NCBI RefSeq assembly: GCF_000002075.1
Contig: NW_004797308.1
Location: forward strand, 240,342-304,341
DNA from: Aplysia californica
Taxonomy: Eukaryota
Direction: 5' to 3'
Length of the DNA: 64,000 bases
The notes under the pieces were generated by a model that made no database searches, was not told the origin of the DNA, and was given only the letters and a program-made list of their open reading frames with translations. Below are positions 851 to 63,347 of the stretch, piece after piece (positions within the stretch are counted from its first letter, which is position 1; each line of letters begins with the position of its first letter). The translations under genes and the position numbers were made by a program.

Positions 851-1308
851 AGCTTAGTAGGTGAAATAAAACACACCAGTGCTTGGTAATTAAACAAATT
901 ATTAAAGCCAGCGCCCACTTTCAAGAGGCTAAAAATTTCGTACGCTCACCTACTTGTATTTCCAATTAGATAATAGGCTACCTGTCACAACCTGGACACC
1001 AAGATTCCCAAATCGCTCATTAGTGAACAATGGACCTTCCAAGTTGGCGAGCACTAGTAGGCCTAATAATAAATTAATTTTAATAATAGTTCAAGGAAAG
1101 AAATTAACAACGCGCTCCGTTAGCTTGTGCGACAGAAATTTTTTCTATATGCCTATTTTGTATACAGTGGCGTCTAAAAGAATCTGGAAAATGTATTCAC
1201 TTAATCATCGAGTTAAAACCTTGCACTACCTACTCAAGCAGAGTACCAATTTAAAGCAAATAAATACATTCTGCATCACTTGACATATCAACATTTCATC
1301 TCTTATTA

Positions 1309-1836
1309 GAGTCGCCCGAGATACTCAAATTTAACCTTTAGGAAATCAGACTTGGCAAAATTCTGTGAAATCAGAGAAACTCAAATGTGTGTTTGCGCGT
1401 GTATTGAGGTTCACCAACACTAGTGGAATTGACGTATTGCACATCAAATGAATGGGGATTTTTTAATAAATTGCCGGTAATAAACTATATTAAAATGTAA
1501 TTATGATGGTTCAAAGCAGATTGGAAAATAAACTGTCACAAACAGCACAAAAAAGTTGAATTTAATATTACATGTGCTCAATAATATTTTGTTTACGAGT
1601 CATTGGTTTGAGTAGAGCGTCAACTCTTTTTTTTAAGCATCATTATAACATAGTTTATTGCAGAGACAATAATAATTATTCTCAATTCATTTGATATTCA
1701 ACACTTGCCCATTCCACCAACTTTAATACACCCTAACACAAGCGTAAATACACTTTTACGTTTCTTTGATTTCACTCAATAAGGACAAGCACGATTTTTA
1801 AATGTTATTTTTGACTGACCATATCTCGGGTGACTC
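1309..1836. mobile_element. Unclassified MITE-like element with GAG...CTC termini
   Basis: gagtcgcccgagata at the left and tatctcgggtgactc at the right form an imperfect TIR; no clear TSD. Confidence 0.45.
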
Positions 1837-59700: not shown

Positions 59701-62700
59701 TGACATAACAAAGACCCGCAATCAACGAAAAGAAGCCGATATCGAGTTTGACAAGCAAGGGATTATCAGTTATCAAACTAGAAATATCATATTACATTAC
59801 ATCAGATACAAACTACAAACTAAAGTATTTTGAATGAAAAAAAAAAAAAGGAAAGGTGATACAAAGTGTAAGCCAACTCAAGAAAGTGACAAAAGAGATA
59901 AATACAACTACACAAAGAAATCACATGTGGATCTGGGAGAGAGAAAAAGATATAAATATTTTCATGACATGTAAGGGAAGGATGTACTCCAACAGAATTC
60001 AAATATAGATCGAACTTAAAATTAGAGAAACTGAATAAATCGTAAGTCTTCCTGACAATTATGATGTATGTAACTTCTCACTGAAAAAAAATAAATTTGT
60101 AGAATCAGTTTATAAACTAATCGGCCTTAAACCTCTTTGAATAACAATAATTATCCCATAATCAAGATTATAGAAAATGATGATCAAGATCTAAAAAGGC
60201 CTCTGTTTGAGCATACTCATATGTGAGACATCAAGTCAAGGTGAAATCAGGCACTCGTCAAAATAATGAAATCCGAGAAATCTGCATTTTTTTTGGCCGT
60301 TGGCCAATTTTTTTCACCTTTTTTTTTTAGACTCAACACCTTTTATGTCCATTAAAAGCACATTTCTGAGAGGATTATACGGGAAAACATTGATTAAAGG
60401 CACAAAAGATGTAAATTTTCAGTTGCCAAGGACTCTCAGGCTATGGAACTTAAGGGGGGGGGGGGGGGGGGCTACACCTGGAGGCTATCTCGCTTATTAC
60501 TGGACCGAATTTTACCAACTTTCACACATATAACAAGCATATAGTAAGGAATTTAAAAATCCGCAATCAAATTTGAGAAAAAAGTTTCGTTTCCATGGAT
60601 ACGCCGCCATATTGGATTTTATTGACATGTCTTACGTAATGAATACCGCACTTATCGCTAATGGAAATTGATTGTTTTTTTGCATGCGTGTTCACAAACA
60701 TTAGATCTAAAATTTTGTCTGTTGTTTTTTTCCTAAACGAATTTGAAAATTTTTAATGAATTTTTTGCTGAGGTAGCATTCAAGTTTGCGAAAAATCCAT
60801 GAAAATCCACACTCCAGACACCACCAACAAAAATCTATTCCATATATCAAAAATTCAACAGACACATTTTTAGTATTACCTCTTCTCTTCACTCTGTGAA
60901 AATTTCATGAAGATTGGATGAAAATGGTGGAGTTATTCAAAAAAGTATAGAGAAAAGTCGCGTTTTGAGAAAACGGCCAATAAAGAAAAATAAAATTCTG
61001 ACTTTTGGAGGAAATGGCGGTTACAAACATGCCCGGTATGGGAAAAAATACGGTTTTTGGGGGTTCTTTTGCGATGACATAGTTGTAGGAGAGGCTGAGG
61101 AAGCTAAAAATGCCTACAACTCAAATTCCATGATTTTGAGCCGAATTTTGACTTCGGGGGTGTAGCCCACCCCTTAAGTTACCAAACTTTGGCAGCCATT
61201 TTCTCGCTAATTTTACTTCTTAAACCAGGCGAACCTGACCTCCTTCAATCGCTAATATTTAGACTTTTATTCAACATAGACGGATATTTGTTTCACCGAA
61301 AAGAAGGCAAATGAACAGGCTTTAAGATGATACTGATAACCCCAAATGCCCAAAAACAATGAGCTCTTGATTCTACCGCGTCGTGGCAGGTGTTTAAGCA
61401 AAGGAATCAGGCGCTTGTCAAATTTTAGGCTTGTGGATTTATTAGTATCATCTGAAAGCCGATTTATTTGCCTTGTTTATAAAGGGAATAAATATCTATC
61501 CATCTTGAATGGAACTTAAGATATCTGCGATTGAAGGAAAAGAGGTCGCCTGGTTTCAGTGGTGAAATTAGGGAGAAAATATGACAGCCAAAGTTTGGTA
61601 ACTCCTTAGCAATGTTTTTCAGTAAAATTCCATGGAAATGTGCTTTTAAATGGACATAAAAGAGGTTGAGCCAAAAAATAAAAATTTGATAAAAATTTCC
61701 AAACTGACAAAAAAAATGCCTGTTTCTCCAATTTCTGTATTTTTAACGAGCGCCTGATTTAGCCATGTTGCCTTACATATATTTTTGCAATATTCATTCT
61801 GTATAATACAGCTGGCTGATGAATATTTCTTTGTACGTTTGTACTAAAAAAAACCCTGACACATCCAAGGAAATGAAGGAGGAGTGTTAAGTAATATATA
61901 TGCCCAGACTATGAAGTATGTACTGTACAACAAAGAAACTTGAAGAATGTGATTTTTATCCCTCTGGAATACTGCATGTGGAGTTTTGGGAAAATTCAAT
62001 GAGCAGTGTGAACTTCAGAGCACTTTCAGAGAACTAAGTTCTTGAATACCATAAGATAACGCCATCTACAGTGTTAAAAATCATAGTGGAATCTTTTGAC
62101 CTTTTGAATATGGAAGTGGTTATTCTCAACCCGGGTGAGATAACCTATATGTCTCGCAAACCTCACCCCCTCCCTTGTTTTACCGGAAGTGACCCAAGAG
62201 GGATCAGGGCAGAGGTTACCGGGGCTTCCACAGAATCGTGTTGGTATCTGAACAGACATACATCTAGATCTAGATATCCAGTCACAGTGAGGGTTGTCAA
62301 ATTGGAGCCAAATTCCAAAAAATTTGTCTCTTTTAGATCGCGTCTGGCCTGGAGAATTTCATTTGGCTCTCTGGCTCCTTATTTGGCTCCAAACTCCAAA
62401 TGTTGAAGAAGAAGGGGACAGAAGAGGCAAGAAAAAAAAGAAAAGAAAAAGAAAGAAAAGACAAAAAATGAAAGTGAAGAAGAGCTTGGATTGTTCAAAA
62501 TTATTAAAACTAGTTAACAAGTTTTAACGCCCTCGTCCATTTGGTCTGAATATTTACAACCCTTCAACCATTGTGCAAGAGCATAGTCTCGTCCTCGTGT
62601 CTTGTTACGTTCGTACACGCTCTGTACCTTCAACCATAATTTATTGTGTGCAGAGAGGCCAGCCATCGTTAAGTGTGTCGGTAGGGAGCCTTTTTTTTTA

Positions 62701-63347
62701 TAGGAGAGGCGAAAAATGTTTTTACATTATTGTTATTCGTTCCCAACCAAATGCGGTAAGCCATCAAGGGCCTAGGAGATTTAATCGGCCTGTGAGAGGC
62801 CAGGGGGGAGTCCTCACCTCATGCCCACACCAGGGTGGGAGCTATTCTCATCGGGGGAGGGGGGGGAATAGCGAAACATGGGTTATTCTCACCCGGGGTG
62901 AGAATAAAGGTGGCCTATGAATATTGCTTTAGGAAGCGTTAACCCTTACAGCTGTGGGCTATTTGTAGCCCTACTTTCCTATGTAGAAAGAAGCATTGTG
63001 AGAGTTGAATTCCTTTTTTCTAACTTGCTTCTTTCACAGTCAGGGTAAAGAATGATTGAAACACCCCTCAAGACTAAATACAGTCAAAATATATAAGCAG
63101 GAGAGAGAAAACAACATGGAAACAATAAAAAAGTAAAAAAGAGAACAGATACTAAAGCAATGTAAACTCATGAGAAAATAAGTAAAATCATAATTTACTT
63201 ACTGGCCTCTTTCCGTTTTTTTTCTACAGTGATTGTGGCAGAGCTGTTTACTTGACAAAAGTCATGGTTCTTGAACGTTAGTACAATTCCACCATCCTCA
63301 GTGCATGTCTTTGTGGGTTGACCAAGTTCGCTGGGACAAATTGGAGG
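53331..63347 (-). CDS. Gene B (5'-partial): paralogue of gene A; complement join(63347-63203,59534-59294,55065-54905,54453-54214,53701-53331), 385 aa visible
   Basis: Five exons with GT-AG introns of phases 1,2,1,1 (same as gene A) give one open frame to the stop at 53331. Cys and motif conservation with A is visible in each exon. Confidence 0.88.
54214..54453 (-). CDS. Gene B stalk and TM exon (EDVDADEDDSDG-LVTKIIIVAVLTFLFILFIIYYMC)
   Basis: ttttcag acceptor, GAG|gttagt donor, phase 1 to 1, strong hydrophobic helix. Confidence 0.9.
54905..55065 (-). CDS. Gene B exon (EFNHTSKPNVGKEYC...YRHSFLLKYSFN), homologue of A 26503-26657
   Basis: ctgacag acceptor, ATG|gtatga donor, 161 nt, phase 2 to 1; not in the ORF track. 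Confidence 0.88.
55978..58474 (+). mobile_element. Decayed Sola1-like DNA transposon
   Basis: Terminal inverted motifs (c)atgattcaac / gttgaatcacg, two at each end. 57570-57840 reads VWHQGEG..ANEISSC...DGCTYQ..N...QMEVDSTHSVIE with frameshifts. Confidence 0.7.
57035..57294. mobile_element. piggyBac-like MITE copy 2, TTAC-flanked, nested in the Sola1-like element
   Basis: ttac|ctctttatctc ... gagataaagag|ttac. Confidence 0.75.
58767..59231. mobile_element. TA-flanked MITE copy 2 (inverted relative to 38433-38890)
   Basis: ta|acaagaggggccact ... agtggcccatcttgt|ta. Confidence 0.85.
59294..59534 (-). CDS. Gene B exon (ISLRDKC...ICFTFLSAHFPVGGAGLLV...GQR), homologue of A 23270-23510
   Basis: tgtttcag acceptor, AAG|gtaagt donor, 241 nt, phase 1 to 2. 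Confidence 0.88.
60454..61173. mobile_element. Kolobok-like non-autonomous element (TTAA TSD, GG...CC termini), nested
   Basis: ttaa|ggg...gctacacc and ggtgtagcccacccc|ttaa; the host element sequence resumes after it. Confidence 0.72.
62118..62907. mobile_element. Unclassified repeat with palindromic termini, copy 2
   Basis: Both ends carry the hairpin ttattctcac-ccgg(g)-gtgagaataa within a ~35-bp TIR; the body matches 9236-10190. Confidence 0.75.
63203..63347 (-). CDS. Gene B exon (PPICPSELGQPTKTCTEDGGIVLTFKNHDFCQVNSSATITVEKKRKEA), homologue of A 17582-17726
   Basis: tttttatag acceptor, CCA|gtaagt donor, 145 nt, phase 0 to 1; shares C, G, DGG, K and DFCxV with A. Confidence 0.87.

Follow-up and report, generated by a model that had tools for sequence, protein, structure and literature searches.

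A tandem cluster of unnamed transmembrane genes with predicted CUB-CUB ectodomains and a terminal PPxY motif in Aplysia californica

What do the divergent single-pass transmembrane (TM) genes that stand close together on one scaffold of Aplysia californica encode, and what might their proteins do? The question arises from a window of 64,000 nucleotides (nt) of contig NW_004797308.1, here scaffold C38 (C38:240342-304341), in an assembly of 927,310,431 bp. A first-pass annotation of this stretch, made from the letters alone, described two intact paralogues, A and B, and a decayed third copy, C, of an unrecognised family with two CUB-like domains, a TM helix and a PPxY-bearing tail, and proposed a role in recognition. 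Here we show that the family is real, expressed (gene A), previously undescribed and built from familiar parts, namely CUB domains, a TM helix, a PPxY (PY) motif and tandem duplication. The pseudogene, the rapid divergence, the constant tail and the recognition role are absent or unsupported. Positions given without a scaffold prefix count from the first nucleotide of the window. Our own gene models were searched against databases exon by exon, while stored database proteins served for whole-protein searches and for folding.

Gene A, on the forward strand, has seven exons with canonical AG/GT intron ends that remain open for 547 residues, and its protein is identical to RefSeq XP_012946951 (LOC101853762, 'uncharacterized'). 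Exon 1 (10550..10640) encodes a signal-peptide-like segment with a phase-1 donor and agrees with the start of the RefSeq protein. Family comparison and structure search assign exon 2 (14004..14356, phase 1 to 0) to the first part of a predicted CUB1, whose second part would be the 145-nt exon 3 (17582..17726, phase 0 to 1); the 241-nt exon 4 (23270..23510, phase 1 to 2) and exon 5 (26503..26657, phase 2 to 1) would likewise supply the two parts of CUB2. An acidic stalk, the single TM helix (about residues 355-377) and juxtamembrane cysteines fall in exon 6 (28476..28676), and a Ser/Pro-rich tail in exon 7 (29430..29887), with PSAP at 29666-29677, PPSY at 29705-29716 and a terminal PPAYxxL from 29849. 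Four assembly gaps lie nearby, two upstream of the gene (6747-6900 and 9360-9459) and two inside intron 4 (24829-25044 and 25101-25238), and none touches an exon. Since the exon 4/5 junction is in phase 2 in all five genes of the cluster and in the RefSeq model, the gaps leave the frame of gene A unaffected and there is no need to postulate a hidden exon.

Gene A is spliced and expressed. In contigs of four independent and probably RNA-based studies, placed on the gene at 90% likeness, exon 5 is joined to exon 6 across a GT..AG intron in all four and exon 6 to exon 7 in two, so that both junctions flanking the TM exon are covered. A contig in two of the studies extends beyond exon 5 by some 1,010 nt in the upstream direction, a length that by itself would suit 830 nt of coding sequence with a short leader. 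The hand-made junctions of the first-pass annotation are thereby borne out by RNA for the 5/6 and 6/7 joins of gene A only.

Gene B, on the reverse strand, is LOC101853998 (XP_005091999), with five exons in the window and two just past its edge. Exons 1 (C38:308232-308142) and 2 (C38:305773-305496) lie outside and, like the 145-nt exon 3 (63203..63347), follow the RefSeq protein; structure search assigns the 241-nt exon 4 (59294..59534) and exon 5 (54905..55065) to the first and second parts of the predicted CUB2. Exon 6 (54214..54453) carries the acidic stalk and TM helix, and exon 7 (53331..53701) the tail, with a terminal PPVYxxL at 53369-53358. The intron phases are 1, 0, 1, 2, 1, 1 in both genes. 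Thus two intact paralogues exist as annotated, both matching RefSeq 'uncharacterized' genes, with the shared phases 0, 1, 2, 1, 1, the equal exons of 145 and 241 nt and the quoted ectodomain motifs all present. The low ectodomain identity that had been judged by eye is measured at 23% (BLASTP E 2e-16).

The CUB-like fold had been read from motif spacing, and structural modelling upholds it. An AlphaFold2 model of the B ectodomain has a predicted local distance difference test score (pLDDT) of 79.7 and a predicted template modelling score (pTM) of 0.74. The best match of its second domain, by VIA-align, is the CUB of Kremen1 (Z 10.4, root-mean-square deviation 2.7, 107 aligned), and it also matches the CUBs of GPR126 and C1s (Z 9.1), those of TSG-6 and PCPE-1, and Neto2 (Z 6.2). 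The first domain of A, modelled alone (pLDDT 62.5), matches a spermadhesin CUB (Z 8.7, root-mean-square deviation 2.9), the top 22 matches all being CUB-containing, and Foldseek and ESM Atlas searches agree with the assignment. These predicted models, as distinct from solved structures, confirm the family ectodomain as two CUB domains. Each CUB corresponds to a pair of exons with phase 1 at entry and exit, and a cysteine-free, acidic stalk of 20-35 residues separates CUB2 from the TM helix. Pfam CUB profiles (PF00431, PF02408 and kin) gave no match up to E 5, whether exons were searched singly or six full-length members whole, a PDB sequence search gave none, and a profile comparison of CUB1 with CUB2 was not significant. 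Judged by eye, GGA-x-L stands where canonical CUBs have the C-x-x-D stretch, and the cysteines are placed elsewhere.

Two tandem CUBs followed by one TM helix come close to the layout of NETO proteins, and Neto2 is among the fold matches, so the family could consist of auxiliary subunits that tune the gating and trafficking of ion channels or receptors in neurons, as do NETO1/2 and the nematode SOL proteins. The low polymorphism of gene A reported below would also fit a conserved partner. We nevertheless consider this quite unlikely: no LDLa module was matched by Pfam between CUB2 and the TM helix, there is no sequence similarity to NETO, Neto ranks well under other CUBs, and the family is narrow in range whereas NETO orthologues are, to our knowledge, conserved across Bilateria. 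A language-model feature search raised a further candidate, since clusters of CRF-binding protein (CRF-BP) were returned with scores of 0.85-0.86 for A and B alike; family members might then be membrane-tethered binders that capture neuropeptides or pheromones and clear them by endocytosis. Scores below 0.9 are leads only, though, and generic CUB clusters rank higher. There is also no Pfam CRF-BP match, and CRF-BP is a secreted protein. Such a role appears highly improbable.

The tails, in contrast to the ectodomains, barely resemble one another. Ectodomain pairs align at z 23-53, whereas tails without their last 16 residues align at z -1.5 to 1.5, no better than shuffles, which is the reverse of the variable ectodomain and constant tail first proposed. 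What all five cluster genes (A, B and the neighbouring D, E and F) keep is a terminal PPxYxx[L/V]F, the sole tail feature common to them. A second PPxY occurs in the tails of A and D and a PSAP in those of A and F, and no acidic dileucine motif was found in the tails. Retention of the terminal PPxY alone in otherwise unalignable tails points to selection on this motif.

Taken with the predicted fold, the motif suggests a trafficking role, to which we give about an even chance: the proteins would be lineage-restricted CUB-CUB sorting receptors or adaptors that bind a partner outside the cell and lower its surface level through Nedd4 and AP-2. The CUB pair would bind either an extracellular protein or a membrane neighbour, perhaps a separate partner for each paralogue, and the overlapping PPxY and YxxPhi motif would recruit a Nedd4-family WW-HECT ligase and AP-2. 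The complex would then be ubiquitinated, endocytosed and sent to lysosomes, so that family members would serve as co-receptors or adaptors in sorting and set the surface levels of other proteins, comparable to LRP10, LRAD3, Kremen and Commissureless. The Nedd4/clathrin signal of ENaC has the same overlapping arrangement, PPPxYxxL (PMC7973139). Among PPxY proteins, LRP10 (CUB-TM-PPxY) reduces IL7R levels and LRAD3 activates Itch via its PPxY; ligase recruitment by PPxY has been shown for LRAD3, whereas for LRP10 it is a proposal (PMC11315911). Several observations weigh against the sorting role or the models beneath it. The models were built on 6-sequence alignments, and whole-ectodomain TM-scores are just 0.25-0.44, low because domain orientation differs. 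PPxY occurs in many single-pass tails and is uninformative on the role of the ectodomain. The RefSeq model of one member, J, stops 22 residues after the TM helix and has no PY motif, which would make J either a tail-less member or an incomplete gene model. Finally, a single lysine in the gene A tail makes A itself a poor ubiquitination substrate, which suits the role of an adaptor more than that of a cargo.

How far does the family extend? A search of the flanking scaffold, as the first-pass annotation had advised, brings the cluster to five intact genes over about 163 kilobases (kb) of C38 in the order D, E, A, B (inverted), F. Gene D (LOC101853293, C38:179796 to about 192760), gene E (LOC101853525, C38 about 208471-218429, plus an unplaced first exon) and gene F (LOC101854233, C38:333528-342439, plus the first exon) are all on the forward strand and have the same intron phases as A and B. 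Genome-wide profile searches reveal a further gene on each of scaffolds C182, C36 and C260 (the last being member J, LOC101847665) and none besides, so that the eight members are a lower bound. The tandem cluster of a lineage-restricted, unnamed family that had been postulated from two genes is therefore supported. The sole supported grouping in a tree (95/98) unites F with H, I and J, the members on other scaffolds, which are 36-51% identical, while A, B, D and E are long branches without resolved placement.

Individual members show peculiarities of their own. RefSeq isoform X2 of gene E (XP_035829846) skips both CUB1 exons in frame (C38:208471-210757), giving a one-CUB protein. The TM exon of gene D (C38:190817-191089) encodes a hydrophobic stretch of unusual length, about 38 residues, broken by two glutamates and an arginine, a segment that might span the membrane twice or re-enter it. 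Gene F has 8 cysteines at the end of its TM helix, likely a palmitoylation cluster, as against three in A and J. A signal-peptide-like exon with a phase-1 donor lies at C38:165793, about 14 kb upstream of D, and is followed by assembly gaps, and no family exon was found after it.

The first-pass annotation took the low identity between paralogues as a mark of rapid divergence and birth-and-death evolution. Ectodomains of the cluster paralogues are 23-30% identical, and 4-fold degenerate sites match in just 4-11 of 17-28 codons per pair. With silent sites this close to saturation, the ratio of replacement to silent substitution rates (dN/dS) between paralogues cannot be estimated, and the paralogues are old, so that low identity is no sign of fast evolution; 23-30% fits old duplications, and age explains the distance. 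The closest pair in the family is 51% identical, with no young near-identical copies among the eight members. Gene death is visible in one place only, at C38:353053-355118 (near 354525), where a partial duplicate of the 3' half of gene F has decayed; its TM exon is 77% identical to that of F, and the donor GT reads AT.

These features bear on whether the genes are polymorphic recognition receptors for immune, allo- or gamete recognition, as Biomphalaria PTC1/PTC2 or Hydractinia Alr are. Tandem single-pass genes with ectodomains 23-30% identical would be expected of such loci, as would the decayed duplicate downstream of F. No kin was detected in pulmonate or sacoglossan proteomes, the CUBs of complement proteases, TSG-6 and spermadhesins are among the fold matches, and one member has a weak match to TMEM154, noted in PTC1 genes (PMC10875847), although at E 0.096 it falls below significance. 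Allelic variation argues the other way. Exon 5 of gene A (155 nt of ectodomain) shows 0 differences from the reference in four of four studies, against one silent change in the TM exon and three changes in the tail (one silent, two replacement) across contigs. Hyper-polymorphism is weakened by the identical exon 5, in a small test that samples one 155-nt exon of one gene through assembled contigs, which drop rare alleles and alleles less than 90% alike. The genome-wide count of eight, a closest pair at 51%, the lack of young copies and of a pseudogene C likewise speak against recognition, PTC ectodomains are FN3 or Ig-like (PMC13712769) and those of Alr are Ig (PMC9546547), and neither the Aplysia immunome paper nor its supplements list the family. 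We therefore regard PTC- or Alr-like recognition as unlikely. A variant reading is a new molluscan class of recognition receptors, in which each paralogue would read its own non-self, gamete or pheromone ligand and remove that ligand by Nedd4-dependent endocytosis, with polymorphism in other exons or members and CUB1 skipping altering specificity; this, too, we consider improbable.

To define the phyletic range, an exon-4 profile of 79 columns was searched against 1.84 billion cluster representatives. It returned six Aplysia proteins, three repetitive false matches and a single fragment of 106 residues (E 8e-4), whose source is marine metagenome assemblies that include one from TARA. The fragment keeps all nine invariant columns, and its exon has the same phase 1 to 2 ends as exon 4. 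By this match the family is present in at least one other animal besides Aplysia, probably a planktonic gastropod. The search picked up no protein of Biomphalaria, Elysia or any other named mollusc, a negative bounded by the reach of the 79-column profile. Word-index protein searches returned the query alone and also missed known paralogues, so they exclude only close relatives, and a phage search, uninformative in itself, gave no match. We found no paper on the LOC identifiers.

The third copy C was placed, without exon coordinates, in the window upstream of gene A. Hidden Markov models of family exons (5-8 members), run over 600-10500 in six frames, reach at most 7.9 bits, within the background of 264 kb, where true exons score 71-128 bits. 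Nor did tblastn, pairwise scoring with nulls or blastn of all paralogue exons find it above background. The best look-alikes are dispersed repeats: the exon-2-like 4380-4760 has at least 45 other copies and the exon-3-like 2255-2500 at least 41, at 64-91% identity over the two. The latter gave z 4.9 against a small null, but it was chosen by eye and is level with background in a 2,270-window scan. The segment 930-1165 is single-copy, yet it scores below the null and has no family resemblance. Nothing supports copy C, and with it goes birth-and-death by a pseudogene inside the window; a very old, fully eroded copy is possible.

Other repeats in the window include a broken long interspersed nuclear element (LINE) at 5097-6569 on the reverse strand (reverse transcriptase RVT_1, E 1e-19, with DUF6451), a LINE-like tail at 344-730 (reverse strand, no Pfam match) and, between A and B, an RNase H-like retroelement fragment at 33081-33482 (reverse strand, E 2e-4). 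Self-inverted elements resembling miniature inverted-repeat transposable elements lie at 1167-1974, 25744-26033 and 61177-61603, and among the further segments repeated within the window are 38427-38905 with 58752-59237 (86%) and 39303-39909 with 39948-40560 (79%).

With this analysis, eight 'uncharacterized' genes of an animal that is a classic model in neuroscience acquire a predicted fold and a trafficking mechanism that can be tested. A CUB lineage too divergent for Pfam and sequence searches suggests that molluscan CUB repertoires are undercounted, and the importance of the family would be much greater if polymorphism or immune or gamete expression held true of it. Our best reading is that the family works like LRP10, LRAD3 or Kremen yet belongs to none of them. 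Kremen1 (Kringle-WSC-CUB-TM), the best structural match of the family CUB2, is a co-receptor driving endocytosis of its partner LRP6; unlike Kremen1, the family has no Kringle or WSC domain, and at 13-15% identity only the fold is in common. NETO1/2 (CUB-CUB-LDLa-TM), which bind and modulate glutamate receptors, share two adjacent CUBs and one TM helix with the family, which differs by lacking LDLa and sequence similarity, by a cysteine pattern off that of canonical CUBs and by a tail ending in a PY motif. Biomphalaria PTC1/PTC2 and Hydractinia Alr, the latter marked by allele-specific homophilic binding, are likewise tandem, divergent single-pass genes with no named orthologues. The ectodomain of PTC1/PTC2 has very high allelic diversity (PMC10875847) and that of Alr belongs to the Ig superfamily (PMC9546547), whereas the family has CUB rather than FN3 or Ig ectodomains, a small set of old, intact copies and no sign of hyper-polymorphism in the one exon tested. 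LRP3, LRP10, LRP12 and LRAD3 share with the family a type I topology and a proline-rich PPxY tail able to engage Nedd4-family ligases (PMC11315911), and LRP10 also has two CUBs. Unlike these proteins, the family has no LDLa repeats, no acidic dileucine motif and no sequence similarity to them, and it comprises eight lineage-restricted genes.

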